Below are positions 2,950 through 27,900 of a stretch of DNA of 28,150 bases, in pieces. Source of the DNA: Octopus sinensis (taxonomy: Eukaryota); assembly GCF_006345805.1 (NCBI RefSeq), contig NW_021827590.1, positions 1 through 28,150 on the forward strand, read 5' to 3'. Numbering within the stretch: the stretch's first letter is position 1; every line of letters starts with the position of its first letter. Under the pieces are notes generated by a model that saw only the letters and a program-made list of their open reading frames with translations, searched no databases and had not been told where the DNA came from. Made by a program: the position numbers and the translations under genes.

Positions 2950-3208
2950 GATATAAAAAGAAGAAAAACACAGAAAGCGGACGCAACCTTACTTCCCAAG
3001 AAAAGAGAGAGAGAGAGAGAGAGAGAGAGAACCGCAAGTGACAGACGGGCTACAAGGGAAGCAACAACAACAACAACAATAACAGCAACAACTGCAATTG
3101 AAAATACTCCAGAAGCAGCTGTAGCCGCAACAACAGCAACAGCAGTAGAAGCAACAGGAACAATAGTTAAAGGGATTTTTCAAATAATAAAGTGTTGAAA
3201 AATCAAAA
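2950..3208 (+). other. Probable 5' UTR part of the neuropeptide exon, containing (GA)n and (CAA/CAG)n runs
   Basis: Lies between the acceptor and the ATG. In-frame TAA TAA at 3185-3190 shows the ORF cannot extend upstream. Confidence 0.55.
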
Positions 3209-3814
3209 ATGTGTCGACAAGGAGTATTCTTCATTGTAGCCATGTGTTTTGTGGTATTTGTACAGTCTTTTGACGTGAAGACATTCTGTAAGACTCGTTG
3301 TGCCGTTGGTAGAGGGGGCAATTTATGTCGTTGCAATGCATTCCACTTCGCTGGCAAAAGATCGGACGGGCAATACAAGCGACAAGAATTCGGCACCATT
3401 AACACAGACGATAATTACAATCCGTTTCAAAGTTATTTTGAAAACCTATCCGGGTCTTTGCCTATACAAAGACAGAGTGCACAGCAAAACGATTACGATG
3501 ACAACGACGCGACTACAGGAAACCAGATGTTATATCCAGTGAGGGATGAGGCCCTCTTCAGAAGGGCCATCTCAGAACAGATGAACTCCAATGATCAACT
3601 TCTACCAGGTGATATCCGCATCCCCAACAGCAACACAAGAAGTCAGAAGGAAGGCAGCCGTCTTCAGAACTTATTGCAGAAACAGTATAAAAGATATAAG
3701 AACGACAGCAACAACAACAACAACAACCTATCTGGAGTACTGCCGATCGACGTCAATGACTTCAATGATAGATCAGCTCGTTTAAGAAACACTTTACATC
3801 ACACTGACAAGTAA
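3209..3814 (+). CDS. Secreted neuropeptide precursor, HFAamide-like (Cys-rich amidated peptide prohormone)
   Basis: AAAA-ATG start context. Hydrophobic signal peptide MCRQGVFFIVAMCFVVFVQS, then FDVKTFCKTRCAVGRGGNLCRCNAFHFA followed by G-KR (amide donor plus dibasic cleavage site). A second KR follows SDGQY, with more RR/KR sites later and an Asn/Gln/Asp-rich spacer typical of prohormones. This is the only long non-repeat, non-TE ORF in the window. The family name rests on the C-terminal HFA-amide and my recall of lophotrochozoan proneuropeptides. Confidence 0.85.
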   Translation: MCRQGVFFIVAMCFVVFVQSFDVKTFCKTRCAVGRGGNLCRCNAFHFAGKRSDGQYKRQEFGTINTDDNYNPFQSYFENLSGSLPIQRQSAQQNDYDDNDATTGNQMLYPVRDEALFRRAISEQMNSNDQLLPGDIRIPNSNTRSQKEGSRLQNLLQKQYKRYKNDSNNNNNNLSGVLPIDVNDFNDRSARLRNTLHHTDK

Positions 3815-3816
3815 GT
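3808..3816 (+). promoter_or_regulatory. Strong 5' splice donor overlapping the last codon and the stop codon
   Basis: CAA|GTAAGT with GT at 3811-3812. The TAA stop (3812-3814) lies within the donor hexamer. Confidence 0.5.
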
Positions 3817-4273: not shown

Positions 4274-5063
4274 CAGAGGTGGACAAAAGTAGGTATACAG
4301 TTCCTTAATATGAGAGAGATGTTCATAACATTTATTTCTTTTTTTAAAACTTGAGTTATTCATAAGTCGACAAAGGGATCTGCAGAAGATACCCAGTTCA
4401 TTTGGAAGCCCCACCTTTTTTTTCTGGGGACATTGACTGAATGCTTGACTAAAAGCATTTCATTTTTTTCAGTGGTAATACCGAACGGTCGACCACTTTT
4501 CTGTTCATCGCAAATGGACCCAGTCTGCTCAAATTTGTCAAGTATTCTGTAAACTATTAATCTTGTCAGAGATTGTCTTTGAAATTCTTCAGTCCATTTA
4601 TATCTAATCATTTCTGCATTCCTTGTTTTCCAGTACTGCTTGATGATCTGTTTTCGTTCATCGTTGATCAAATTCCCAGCCCTGTAATGAATATATGAAA
4701 TTAGGAATAAATATTTTATTAGAGAAAGAATTTGTAACAAAAAAAAAACAACATAGAATCATAGAATTCTTATCCTAAAAAACAGAAATAAAGAACATCC
4801 CTCTCATATTATTTTCAAATTCTGGCACAAGGCCAGTAATTTCGGCTGAGGTTACATCGACCCCGATATTCAACTGGTACTTATTTCATCGACTCCGAAA
4901 CGATGAATGGCTAAGTCGACCTCGGTGGAATTTTGAACTCAGAACGTAAAGACGGACGGAATTCCGCGAAGTATTTTGCCCGGCGTTCTAACGATTCTAC
5001 TAGCTTGCTACCCTGCATTCCAGTCATATTAAGTAACTGTATACCTACTTTTGCCCACCCTTA
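4274..5063 (-). mobile_element. Internally deleted Tc1/mariner-superfamily transposon with both TIRs
   Basis: ~29-bp TIRs: CAGAGGTGGACAAAAGTAGGTATACAGTT at 4274-4302 and AACTGTATACCTACTTTTGCCCACCC at 5035-5060. The minus-strand remnant ERKQIIKQYWKT...RILDKFEQTGSICDEQKSGRP resembles a transposase N-terminal HTH region. Confidence 0.8.
4808..5014 (-). mobile_element. tRNA-derived SINE (family B), nested inside the mariner element
   Basis: Homologous to 5521-5737 and 26421-26641. B-box-like GAGTTCAAA and a tRNA-like head at the right end. Confidence 0.8.
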
Positions 5064-11998: not shown

Positions 11999-13203
11999 AG
12001 GTGGGGACAGTATAAGCTTCATAGATGCAACAGGCCGCGTGAAGATTTGAGTATAAGACATTTGTTAATATTGATACATTTCAGCTAACCATAGACGCTG
12101 ACATATTCCAAAGTGCACATACATGCGTACACGAACGTACACCATACATATACACATACACGGACACGCATTGGGGCATGTATTTGACTGAGCTCTTTCT
12201 CTCCATCTTTCAGTAAACTTTGGTGTTCCCAGAGTCCAGTCCTGTTTCCCATTCTGTTCCTTCTATATATCACACTGATCTAGTTGAGCCATATCCAACA
12301 ATACTCTTTAATTCCTTCTTAACAATGTCTTTTCCCACATGCAACCGAGGCACAACACATCAAGCATGGATTGATTCTGTACACGTTTATTTTGAATGCG
12401 TCACCTAGTCGGGCTATTCCATTCTTGTCTTTTTTAACAACAGAAAAGAAAAGAAAGATAGAAAGAAAGAATATCTCAAGCACCCCTATTATTAAGAAAC
12501 CACCACTATCACTGTCCTACACTATCTCTAAACATGATGAGCATTCGCACAATCGATCCAAATTAATCACTGTCAAATGGCGAAAGTACATCCTTATTTT
12601 AAATTAAGGCCACAAATGGTGCTACTTAAGCGTGCAGTCTTCCTCAGTATCCGAAGTTTACACTGAAATGACGTGATCTCTCCACTGAGATCACAGCTGG
12701 TTTTGTGATCTTCCATGGTGTGAATTTATCACTTGTGCCTACCTTTTTTAAATATATTATTTAGCATTTTGAGGATTATGATTTGTATGATTAAGTTTAT
12801 GTCATTAATTATAAATCATTATTCAACATTATTCAACTATTTTTTGTCATCCTGCAGTATAAAGTTCTTGTAGCTGTGGTAGACTACACACTGTGCTGGT
12901 AGGTCGTACGCTGAGGTGTAAATGGCCGAGTAGACCGTACGCTAAAGTTGCACCGAATATTTCAGTCCCATCACCTGCCGATACTCTACAAGGCTTAACT
13001 GAAGTACTTTACCTGGCTGTGAGGTACGTTTAGCGGATTTCACTCTAATACCAACGTTTAGGATAGGTTTCTGGTCCGAAGATAACTTTCTAATTTCCAC
13101 CACTATCGCAAACACTGTAAACTGTGATGGATGGGTCCTGTCCTCCCTTGTCGCAGCCGATAAAAGCAAAAATATAAATGAATATAAACTATGGGGTGCT
13201 TCA

Positions 13204-14488: not shown

Positions 14489-15208
14489 GATTTGCGTTGG
14501 ACAAAACACATTGCTAAAATTGCCAAGAAGATTGAGGGTGTCTTGGTATCACTCACCAAGTCCTTTGTGAGCTGCTCTCCGGCTATCTATCTGCGGCTTA
14601 ATATAGCTATGGTGCGACTTCACCGGGAATTTGCATCACCGGTCTGGAACCCCTATCTTGCTCATGATATTAATCGTCTGGAAGCCGTTCAGCGACGTGC
14701 AACCAAGAGAATACTATCCATCAGGCATTTGCCGTATTCTGAACGCCTTACTTCCCTGGGCATGGATACATTGAAACTCCGACGTCTGGCAGCTGACTTG
14801 GCAGACACCCATAAAATTGTTAACCATCTTACAAACAATAACTCTGTGCACCTTTTCAAACTCCATCTGTCCAACACCCGTGGACATGTTTACAAAGTCA
14901 GAAAACAGCACAGCTCCCATGACTTTCCGAAACATTTTTTCACGCTAAGATTTGCTGAAGCATGGAACAAACTGCCGGCATCAGCTGTTAGTTGTCGGAG
15001 CACTGCATCCTTCAAACTTCCATGCTTCCTGAGATTCGCCAACACTATACCTGATTTTCTCCCCTCCATAAACACGCAAACATGTATCTGACTCATACAC
15101 TGTTCCCTTTCTAGACATTTGTACATTACTGCATATGCTTTATACGCACTTTTGACAAGTTGTGGTGCACCTGAGCAATGTATACAATAATTTCATTATT
15201 ATTATTAT
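14489..15208 (+). mobile_element. 5'-truncated CR1-type LINE (ORF2 C-terminus, 3' UTR and (ATT)n tail)
   Basis: ORF 14492-15091 carries CR1-group motifs ASPVWNPY, LEAVQRRATK, YSERL..LG, NTRGH, FF..R..EAWNKLP. The tail CATTATTATTATTAT is at 15194-15208. Confidence 0.9.
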
Positions 15209-18079: not shown

Positions 18080-19297
18080 CAAAACATGCAAAATCCTGAC
18101 AACAACTGGGAACTTCCACAGAAACAGTGATGTTGACAGGCTCTATCTAAGAAGAAATGTAGGCGGCAGAGGCCTGAGATCAGTGCAGACGGCCTTCGAA
18201 TGTCGTATGGTATTACTCAAGCAGCACCTGTTAAACAATGTATTAATGCTGTACTGAAAAGTGAAGTGAGCGACATTGTACGAGTTGTCAGTGAACTCTT
18301 TAAGAAACTCTCTCTTACTGATGATTTTCTATTGAGCCCCAAAACAGCTGGACTCTCTTACCCCAGAGAAGATCTGGATGGAAAGCACTCAGCATACAAA
18401 AAACAAAAAGACCTTCCATGGGTATGTGGACCGGCAACTTGAAGAAGACAGTAGGATTAACACGAATCACAGTCTCTCATGGACACAAAGCCACTACTTC
18501 ACATCACACTTTGAAAGCTATGCGACTGCAATCCAGGAACAGGAGATTGCCATAAAGTTCCTGGTGAACAAGAGAGACAGTGATGCTCTTGTAATCCCAA
18601 GGTGCAACCGCATGTGTAGGCTACATCATGTTTCCGTGGAAGACATTACGCATGTGATTACCAGCTGTCCTAAAGTGTCGTCACGGTATTACCTCCCTAT
18701 GCGGCACGATGTTGTTGCTAAAACAATTTACAATGCCATCTACAAAAAGGACTCCCCTGAAATAAATTTAGAAAATGGCTCTGTTATGGAATACATTCAC
18801 AAACACCAACTCAAAGAATACTGGCGGAATATTCCCATCAAAACTTCTGTCAAATATAAACATAACAGGCCGGATATTGTTGTTTGGGACAGAGGGGCAA
18901 ATGTATGTACCCTCATAGAGATCAGTTGCTCTGCAGATATAAATATCTCTTTGGAAATCAAAGAAAAAGAAGATACCTATGGGCAGCTGGTTCGAAACCT
19001 TCAGCTTCTATATCCAGACTATGAATTCATATTCATAACAATCATAATTGGAGCACAAGATTTTATTAGTAAATGCTTAAATGAGGATCTGGATAAACTG
19101 AGATTTTCAGAAAGAGAAATTGACTGGCTGATTCGTACATTATAAGTGCAATCTGTGAGTGGAACAGTAAAAATATGCAAGACTTTTCTCAAGTTCCAAA
19201 TGCGAATTTGTTTGTGTTAAGATGGAGCCTTGTATCTTTGTTGGAAACCGGTTCCCTCCTCAGACGAAATTTTATAATAATTAAAAAATAGAAGAGA
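18079..19297 (+). mobile_element. 5'-truncated R4/Dong-type non-LTR retrotransposon with a restriction-like endonuclease (frameshifted)
   Basis: Motifs FHRNSDVDRLY...GGRGL, a zinc-knuckle region (CRL...EDITHVITSCP...YY..RHD), HNRPDIVV and KEDTYGQL. Flanked on both sides by (CATA)n. Confidence 0.9.
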
Positions 19298-23327: not shown

Positions 23328-23915
23328 CTAATGTCTATTGAGACACACCAGCACGCTTGCAGCGATGCCGCGGGTGATGGTGAGGCTGATGCGCTGGAAC
23401 AGCCAAGCGCCCCCACGAGCCTCATCAGTTACCTCTGCAAGGCGAGTTGCCAGAGAAGACGGGAATCTCACAGTAAGTGGTCCGACCCCACCAAAGTCTC
23501 GAACGCCACATGATGGAAACCGTAGTTGACCGACAGATCGCAGTATTTCAGGACTTTGTTCTGCTCGGCCGCAGAAGCTGTAGACCTCGCCCTGGCCGCA
23601 GCATCCAGGATGTGAGAAGAAGCAAAGGAGTCACTAACTGTGACATCCCAGACAAAGCATCTGCCTTGGGACCAGGGGCACAGGGCGAGGTTTTCAGGTT
23701 TCTTCCCATCATATCATGGTTCCAAGAGGGAGGGGATGTTTGCTCGGGCCAAGCTCCTCTTGAGTATCAGGTTCAACTCCGTATGGCGCGCGAAGCGACC
23801 AGAATTCAGGCGGCAAGAAAGGTCATGGAGATCCGTGGAGTCGAGGATCCCACCAGAATGACAGATCAAACCCGCGCATACGGCAGCTCCTACTCTGGGG
23901 GCAAGGGAGACACGG
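23328..23915 (-). mobile_element. CRE-type non-LTR retrotransposon C-terminal fragment (zinc knuckle plus restriction-like endonuclease), pseudogenised
   Basis: My minus-strand translation: LHDLSCRLNSGRFARHTELNLILKRSLARANIPSLLEP*YDGKKPENLALCPWSQGRCFVWDVT...AAEQNKVLKY...AWLFQRISLTITRGIAASVL. It contains an internal stop and a frameshift. Confidence 0.8.
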
Positions 23916-24482
23916 TTGTCAGAATGTTGGATGATTTATATATATTTTTATTTACATTTTTAGCGCTTTCTTCCGTTCCCCATCCAAAAGATCACCAAAA
24001 AGGAAAAAATATTGAATCCTAATCAAACAAATTTGACCACACTGATACAAAACCACGCCTCCTACCTCCCTCTCCCCTTCAAACTTTTTTCTTCTTTCTT
24101 TTCCCTTCCTCCGCAAAGTCGCAAAAGATTCCTCCTTTCTTTTCTCTTCTCTATTTTCACCATCTCCCACTTTCTTCTCTCTCACCCCTGCACCTTCCTT
24201 TCTAATTTCCTCCTCCCTCTCTCTCCCCTCTCCCCTCTCCCCTCTCTCCCTCTTCCTAAAATATCACCAGCTTCAATTTTATATAAAAAGGCGAAGCAGA
24301 CTTATTATAAACCACTTTTTTGATAAATCCAATAACGGAAGAAAGGGCTAAAAGTGTAAATAAAATGCAAATAAAAAAATATATAATCATCTAACATTCT
24401 GACTACTTTATTATTTTCAATATACAATATCTGTACATCACTTCAAAAACTCTCTCACTGTCTCACACTATATATATATATA

Positions 24483-27033: not shown

Positions 27034-27454
27034 TATAATATATACACATACGTACATACATACATACATACACACACACATGCATATAGACATACACACA
27101 TGCATATATCTATCTACCTATCAATTTGTTTGTCTGTCTATCTGTATGTATGTATTTATGTATGTATATATATATATATATATATAAGGTAGAAAATGCT
27201 AAAATAATTTTATCATGAAATACATTTTGTAATAGTTAGTACCGGTTTCGACTTTTCGACCTTTTCAACTAAGAGTAAATCAAAGGTGGATATTAATTAA
27301 GGAGAAGAACAATTAAATTCGAGAAAAAAAATTAAACGAAATGTTTTGTAAATATTTCCATAGTCTTCAAATGGGTGGGACATTTTCCTTTTTTGTGTGT
27401 GTCTCTCTGCTTTTCTTTTGTGAAGGTTCACAAGGTAGGCAGATAGTAGCAGAT

Positions 27455-27900
27455 CCGAAGCAGCCCAATTCAATGAAAAGTATTCTAACACAAGCCCAAG
27501 TACACTCATTAACAACATCGATACCGACAGTAAAAAATGCGGAAGACCTATGCGTCAACCTAATTCAGGGATCGGAGTTCTCCTTCAAACAGGGTCAACG
27601 TTTTACAGTGAAACACAACTTCACATGTGCTTCGGAAAACCTGATATACGTGTTATCTTGCTCAGGGTGTCGAGAGCAATACATTGGTCATACTAAAAAC
27701 AGTCTACGCCAGAGGATGACCACACATAGATCTCAGATTAAAATACAGGAATACAGTAAAATAGCATTAAGTGAACACATCAACATTTGCGTCACTTTTG
27801 AACAATCCAACTTTAGAATTTCCCCGCCCCTATAAATTTAGGGACAATGCAACCTATAATTAACACATTAGCAAAGAATTATAATTTTTTTTAATGCATC
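27455..27900 (+). pseudogene. Penelope-like GIY-YIG endonuclease fragment
   Basis: KQPNSMKSILT...NFTCASENLIYVLSCSGCREQYIGHTKNSLRQRMTTHRSQI shows the LIY/YIG motif with the PLE C-x2-C insert and a conserved Arg. Stops follow after 27835. Confidence 0.85.

Follow-up and report, generated by a model that had tools for sequence, protein, structure and literature searches.

A 28,150-bp scaffold of Octopus sinensis (NW_021827590.1; "the window" below means this whole stretch) most probably contains the octopus orthologue of the lophotrochozoan HFAamide proneuropeptide gene. The open reading frame (ORF) at 3209-3814 on the forward strand translates into 201 residues, and we put the probability that it belongs to this family and is processed to an amidated neuropeptide at roughly 85%, judging from sequence. 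Over 200-201 residues its product is identical to isoforms X1-X3 of RefSeq locus LOC118761014, which bears the label "uncharacterized protein". A preliminary description of the DNA, made from its letters alone, had located the ORF and all the elements within it correctly and had already suggested a cephalopod HFAamide precursor. That suggestion is borne out by the cysteine framework, the G-x-GG loop, the H-F-A-G-K-R ending and an independent profile search.

The HFAamide family was defined in Platynereis and molluscs (PMC3890597) and was subsequently reported from nemerteans, brachiopods and phoronids (PMC8557429), from the oyster (PMC8398477) and from Conus (PMC13542836). Its peptides are orphan ligands, as the preliminary description had assumed: the Conus study lists their function and target as 'Unknown' (PMC13542836), and the literature we searched yielded neither a receptor nor a function. 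The same searches returned no paper that reports the octopus peptide string or its LOC or XP identifiers, and no cephalopod neuropeptide list that names HFAamide. The octopus gene is thus an ordinary, unannotated member of a known orphan family, whose presence in cephalopods specialists would expect.

Family membership of the octopus ORF

A profile hidden Markov model (HMM) built from 10 published non-cephalopod HFAamide precursors (annelid, nemertean, brachiopod and phoronid sequences from the supplements of Conzelmann et al. 2013 and Thiel et al. 2021) matched the ORF with 51.3 bits and an E-value of 4.3e-15. Among the 919 six-frame stop-to-stop segments of the window this was the sole match, the next best segment reaching an E-value of 0.11, and a second family copy in the window was rejected on the outcome of that search. 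An antisense ORF at 2989-3405 was rejected as low-complexity. The published members have in common the pattern F/Y-C-x3-C-x2-G-x-GG-x2-C-x-C-N-A-x-H-F-A/T-G-K-R, and nine columns are invariant between them and the octopus sequence: Cys27, Cys31, Gly34, Cys40, Cys42, Phe47, Gly49, Lys50 and Arg51.

The breadth of the family emerged from an exhaustive scan, in which a profile of octopod and metagenomic sequences was compared with 1.84 billion representative proteins without a word index. The scan returned 170 proteins at E ≤ 1e-3, 106 of them at E ≤ 1e-10, and recovered the Argonauta orthologue with an E-value of 3e-24. Word-indexed searches with family alignments were too insensitive for this (6 and 4 matches), a word-indexed protein search with the whole octopus protein found octopods only, and a Pfam scan of the octopus precursor found no family. 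The readable entries among the family-scan proteins come from gastropods (Babylonia, Patella, Aplysia, Bulinus and Candidula) and are labelled 'uncharacterized' or 'hypothetical'.

Of the 153 complete peptide copies within the proteins from the scan, 152 show the same spacing, C-x3-C-x8-C-x-C-x6-G-[KR][KR]. The tripeptide before the glycine is most commonly HFA (92 copies), with HFV, KFA, YFA or HFT in most others. At the amidation and dibasic positions, 143 family peptides have Gly in 100%, Lys in 99% and Arg in 98% of cases. The three residues in front of them are H in 81%, F in 98% and A in 73% of the family, and the octopus peptide ends in ...NAFHFA-G-KR. Its loop between the second and third cysteines, G34-R-G36-G37-N-L, likewise follows the family, where these positions hold G in 94%, R in 66%, G in 100%, G in 100%, N in 78% and L in 78% of cases. 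At nearly all conserved family columns, the octopus peptide carries the majority residue.

A few family precursors, known from metagenomic or Logan contigs and including P0016 and P0158, hold the peptide in two or three copies. The ending of P0158, ...SLPGKR, is divergent, and sub-groups ending in KFA-GKR and YFA-GKR also exist.

Layout and predicted processing of the precursor

The N-terminal part of the octopus precursor is composed of three elements:

3209-3268, forward strand: predicted signal peptide, residues 1-20, MCRQGVFFIVAMCFVVFVQS, with predicted cleavage after Ser20
3269-3352, forward strand: predicted mature peptide, residues 21-48, FDVKTFCKTRCAVGRGGNLCRCNAFHFA, 28 residues with four cysteines and a net charge of +4
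3353-3361, forward strand: Gly49-Lys50-Arg51, predicted amidation donor and dibasic convertase site

The leader starts with one basic residue, followed by a hydrophobic core of 14 residues whose Kyte-Doolittle values average 3.0, and has Val at position -3 and Ser at position -1; by this heuristic it has both the hydrophobic core of a signal peptide and a cleavage site that obeys the -3/-1 rule. The four cysteines (Cys27, 31, 40 and 42) are spaced C-x3-C-x8-C-x-C. Sequence and hydrophobicity thus agree with the arrangement proposed earlier, namely a signal peptide that directly precedes one 28-residue peptide and then G-KR.

The boundaries of the mature peptide are fixed by comparison across the family. 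By a heuristic that looks for a hydrophobic leader ending at the peptide start, 92 of 141 family precursors have the same leader-then-peptide layout. A phenylalanine stands six residues before the first cysteine in 96 of the 141, and the residue in front of it is S, A or G in 85 and R in 14. In 12 precursors, RR or KR stands immediately before the first residue of the peptide. Two processing routes, by signal peptidase and by convertase, would converge on one boundary, and this speaks well for the 28-residue form as the product.

The combined roles of a convertase, a carboxypeptidase and peptidylglycine alpha-amidating monooxygenase (PAM) at a glycine followed by a dibasic site are established secretory-pathway biochemistry. 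By the same biochemistry, the octopus leader would be removed after Ser20 by signal peptidase in the endoplasmic reticulum, and two disulfides would form by oxidative folding. A prohormone convertase would then cut after Lys50-Arg51, a carboxypeptidase would trim these two residues, and PAM would turn Gly49 into the amide of Ala48 to give FDVKTFCKTRCAVGRGGNLCRCNAFHFA-NH2, for which we calculate a monoisotopic mass of 3115.46 Da. Judged by its relatives in other phyla, the peptide may be stored in dense-core vesicles of a few neurons or neurosecretory cells, and after its release it would act on a receptor, most probably a G protein-coupled receptor (GPCR). The remainder of the precursor may be cut at RR118-119 and KR161-162 into further fragments, or its only role may be that of a spacer or in sorting.

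Conservation in octopods and their relatives

An Octopus vulgaris protein matches the ORF product completely; identity is 97% with O. bimaculoides LOC106873001, 95% with the protein of a fourth octopus from the Logan assemblies and 66% with a protein of Argonauta hians. All the octopod orthologues are labelled 'uncharacterized' or 'hypothetical'. The predicted mature peptide is the same in the four Octopus, and the Argonauta peptide matches it at 22 of 28 residues, with six differences that are all conservative.

At the nucleotide level, we compared the O. sinensis gene with a genomic contig from another octopus (L001). The peptide together with its GKR signal has 3 differences, all of which are synonymous. 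The leader has three, two of them non-synonymous, and the tail has 20, several of which replace residues. This distribution of substitutions shows the HFAamide-type peptide to be under purifying selection among octopods.

The closest non-octopod relative is P0044, encoded by contig L003 from Logan SRR32601320. Its peptide, FDLQKFCRKRCAIGQGGNLCRCTAHHFA, is identical at 25 of 31 positions, and beyond the peptide it has in common with octopus the GKRSD junction, a poly-Asn run and a KRY-R-RYN motif. Because of these common features, P0044 probably comes from another cephalopod, and we infer that HFAamide is conserved in non-octopod cephalopods as well.

Predicted fold and disulfide pairing

For the mature peptide, AlphaFold2 was given a 97-sequence ungapped alignment of the family and returned a model with a mean predicted local distance difference test score (pLDDT) of 79, rising to 87 over the first 20 residues. 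The model places a helix over peptide residues 3-12, which bears both cysteines of the C-x3-C element, followed by a turn at G-R-G-G and an extended C-terminal part. Taken together, the CxxxC/CxC arrangement and the predicted helix suggest disulfides between Cys27 and Cys40 and between Cys31 and Cys42 (I-III, II-IV).

Such a pairing recalls the cystine-stabilised helix (CSH) motif, which was reportedly described by Kobayashi and by Tamaoki and colleagues. In this motif, a CxxxC on a helix is disulfide-paired with a CxC. The octopus peptide resembles CSH peptides at the level of the motif only, with its CxxxC on a predicted helix and a CxC downstream, and it differs from the classic examples in the order of the elements and in its amidated tail.

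The preliminary description had called the peptide 'Cys-knotted', and this part of it does not hold. A cystine knot of the knottin type has at least six cysteines that form three disulfides, one of which threads a ring made by the other two. The octopus mature peptide has four cysteines, enough for two disulfides at most, and the rest of the precursor has none, which rules out a knot. A two-disulfide helix-stabilising motif is the more likely structure.

Comparison with known HFAamide precursors

The HFAamide precursor of Platynereis dumerilii (PMC3890597) has a leader, one copy of FEYNGYCQKMCRWGRGGNLCKCNAVHFA, GKR and an acidic Cys-free tail. Its peptide and that of octopus both measure 28 residues from Phe to Ala with identical cysteine spacing, and the stretch G-R-G-G-N-L-C-x-C-N-A-x-H-F-A-G-K-R is nearly identical in the two. 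They differ in the residues between the first two cysteines, in the N-terminal hexapeptide (FDVKTF against FEYNGY) and at position 25, which is Phe in octopus and Val in Platynereis. Their tails cannot be aligned except for a short amphipathic motif. In a proneuropeptide survey of Platynereis larvae by in situ hybridisation, HFAa gave a signal only at the 3-day stage (PMC5747525).

Molluscan precursors, such as Cragi-HFAamide of Crassostrea gigas (PMC8398477) and those of Conus (PMC13542836) and gastropods, are built on the same framework. Several representatives, Babylonia areolata XP_076437447 among them, end in N-A-F-H-F-A as octopus does. Molluscan precursors range from 120 to 507 residues in length and their tails are not conserved; to this the octopus gene adds alternative short 3' exons. 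In Conus, neuropeptide transcripts in general are described as having nerve-ring expression (PMC13542836).

Nemertean, brachiopod and phoronid precursors (PMC8557429) have the leader-peptide-GKR layout and the nine invariant positions in common with octopus. The brachiopod Novocrania peptide ends in CRCNAVHFTGKR and the octopus peptide in CRCNAFHFAGKR. Phoronid peptides differ in that they lack the GG pair or have a longer loop between the second and third cysteines, and they end in HFT.

Exon structure and alternative 3' ends

The gene features outside the peptide-coding part are as follows:

2950-3810, forward strand: main exon of LOC118761014, preceded by AG at 2948-2949 after a pyrimidine-rich tract and ending in AA before GTAAGT
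2950-3208, forward strand: 5' untranslated part of this exon, the coding sequence running from 3209 to the splice donor
3811-3816, forward strand: splice donor GTAAGT after the exon end at 3810, with the TAA stop (3812-3814) inside it; kept in L001
6840-6981, forward strand: alternative 3' exon of isoform X1, an exact match to the tail of XP_036354545 after an AG acceptor
12858-12873, forward strand: alternative 3' exon of isoform X2, an exact match to the tail of XP_036354547 after a ctgcag acceptor

The ATG at 3209 has an A at position -3 and in-frame stops upstream, and 2950-3208 contains no other ATG. Both exon-boundary signals are kept in L001, which is 91% identical at the nucleotide level; identity rises from 84% upstream of 2950, in the intron, to 89-97% inside the exon. 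The sequence TATAAAA lies at 2952-2958, directly after the AG at 2948-2949, and both of these signals are kept in L001. Within the 5' untranslated part there is an (AG)13 repeat at 3004-3030, and a short distance upstream of the exon come (AGAC)n and (ATAC)n arrays (2227-2291 and 2363-2493).

At the 3' end, the RefSeq isoforms use the GTAAGT donor and read ...HHTD-N/K into downstream exons. Since the TAA stop overlaps this used donor, the true C-terminus differs from that of the plain ORF by 1-46 residues. The X1 exon adds N-HWTAVVLVHRF... (47 residues) and a stop, its tail beginning NHWTAVVLVHRF. The X1 form of O. bimaculoides ends in a related tail that stops sooner and is shorter, NHLTATMLEHRL; thus, the exon is shared between the two species and the length of its reading frame is not conserved. 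The X2 exon adds N-IKFL and a stop. The O. sinensis scaffold yielded no 3' exon for the K-AGRR tail that O. vulgaris and O. bimaculoides have. The alternative tails all leave the HFAamide-type peptide untouched.

SDGQY and the C-terminal tail

Downstream of the amidation signal, the precursor contains the following elements:

3362-3376 and 3377-3382, forward strand: pentapeptide SDGQY and a second KR, residues 52-58
3383-3810, forward strand: Cys-free C-terminal part, residues 59-200, rich in Asn, Gln, Ser and acidic residues
3560-3565, forward strand: RR118-119, kept in Argonauta
3656-3688, forward strand: amphipathic motif SRLQNLLQKQY, followed by KR161-162
3689-3694, forward strand: KR161-162, kept in Argonauta
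3710-3727, forward strand: coding (AAC)6 microsatellite, a poly-Asn run

SDGQY had been put forward as a possible further peptide, a proposal that finds little support in the comparison. The Argonauta counterpart, SGDLY-KR, keeps the KR flanks, and no counterpart is present in P0044 or in the precursors compared from other phyla. On account of this absence, we read SDGQY as probably a spacer that is specific to octopods; it carries no amidation signal.

The tail of the plain ORF after the second KR comprises 143 residues. Its poly-Asn run differs between octopus species (NNNNNN, SSDSNNNNN and SNDSSNNN). An amphipathic motif of the form R-L-x-x-L-L-x-x-x-L recurs near the C-terminus: among 144 family precursors, 48 exceed the 95th percentile obtained with shuffled sequences, where about 7 would be expected. 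This excess is overstated, since the 10 seed motifs, those of two octopod precursors included, were taken from the same 144 precursors that were tested. The element may act as a helix for sorting, or may itself be a second product.

It is conceivable, though unlikely, that the main product or an additional bioactive one comes from this Cys-free tail, as a fragment ending in ...SRLQNLLQKQY or as the fragment after KR161-162, which would make the precursor bifunctional. The retention of RR118-119 and KR161-162 in Argonauta speaks for such a product, as do the recurrence of KRY-K/R-RYN in P0044 and the enrichment of the R-L-x-x-L-L motif. Against it, that enrichment test took in its own seed sequences, the tail is 66% identical between Octopus and Argonauta, and beyond cephalopods it cannot be aligned apart from the short motif. 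The tail also has no Gly-dibasic amidation signal and holds a microsatellite of variable length, and prohormones often use such amphipathic helices for sorting or as spacers.

Alternative readings of the peptide

Several observations weigh against the assignment of the ORF as the gene of an amidated neuropeptide. A transcript look-up with the exact 201-residue ORF product found nothing on record, and the two contigs that encode a near-identical protein, L001 and L002, are genomic and not transcript sequences, since they are collinear with the genome through both splice signals. At the 5' end, position 2950 may be the splice acceptor for an upstream 5' exon, or it may adjoin a TATA-box promoter of a single 5' exon, in which case transcription would be expected to start further downstream. 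For the fold, a Foldseek search of the peptide model against the PDB gave 0 matches, the family profile found no solved relative among PDB sequences (one chance match, with an E-value of 0.19), and the disulfide pairing is deduced from the cysteine arrangement and the model. The oyster orthologue is expressed weakly in visceral ganglia and most highly in larvae and mantle (PMC8398477), so that a strictly neuronal role is not guaranteed.

A different view of the target, to which we give a low probability, accepts the HFAamide peptides as endogenous modulators and has them act on an ion channel or another non-GPCR target instead of being classical GPCR ligands. It draws on the invariant two-disulfide helix scaffold, the basic surface and the amidated aromatic tail, and the recruitment of the same scaffold into cone-snail venom suggests that its target is deeply conserved. 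In a weaker variant, the conserved amphipathic element of the tail may be a second signalling peptide. If a non-GPCR target were confirmed, the octopus peptide would give access to it in a large and accessible nervous system.

It is very unlikely that the octopus peptide is a secreted, non-neuronal effector, either a salivary or venom 'doppelganger' of the HFAamide of prey or a cationic antimicrobial or defence peptide. There is a precedent in Conus, which recruited HFAamide into its venom as a 'doppelganger', with the peptide detected in C. textile venom (PMC13542836); since this venom peptide belongs to the same neuropeptide family, the scaffold is able to exert pharmacological effects on other animals. 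Moreover, the octopus mature peptide is small, predicted to be disulfide-bonded and charged +4, and the larval and mantle expression of the oyster orthologue (PMC8398477) would fit a role outside neurons. However, recruited toxins typically diverge in the toxin-encoding region (PMC13542836), whereas the octopus peptide lies near the family consensus and does not vary between the four Octopus species. By description, the Conus venom HFAamide is marked by venom-gland expression, a 5' untranslated region of the conotoxin O2 superfamily and a diverged toxin region (PMC13542836), none of which is seen in octopus, and the window holds one HFAamide copy only. In a 2026 survey of cephalopod salivary-gland toxins, an HFAamide model was among the queries and no HFAamide mimic was reported; the mimics found were only those of stanniocalcin, luqin, myosuppressin, tachykinin and neurotensin (10.64898/2026.02.02.703354).

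Finally, a chance or decaying frame in repeat-rich DNA that yields no product is excluded by conservation for practical purposes: although microsatellites and transposon remnants abound in the scaffold, the profile match reaches an E-value of 4e-15, the frame is intact in five octopod species with only synonymous change in the peptide relative to L001, the splice signals are conserved in that contig, and RefSeq models three spliced isoforms.

Implications

With about 170 representatives and a framework invariant in all but one of 153 copies, HFAamide is among the most sequence-conserved lophotrochozoan peptides. The octopus member leaves knowledge of the family itself unchanged. Naming the gene fills a gap in the annotation of O. 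sinensis, O. vulgaris, O. bimaculoides and Argonauta, and it provides a defined ligand for receptor deorphanisation and for expression mapping in cephalopod brains.

Other features of the window

Further ORFs in the window point to mobile elements. An ORF at 4360-4740 on the reverse strand, in the intron downstream of the main exon, encodes a DUF4817 helix-turn-helix domain (E-value 8e-7) and is probably a remnant of a DNA-transposon transposase. Three forward-strand ORFs at 14492-15091, 18378-19145 and 23477-24022 (199, 255 and 181 residues) gave no Pfam match and are probably degraded mobile-element genes. Near the end of the window, the forward-strand ORF at 27341-27835 encodes a GIY-YIG nuclease domain (E-value 9e-5), a domain that occurs in Penelope-like retroelements.

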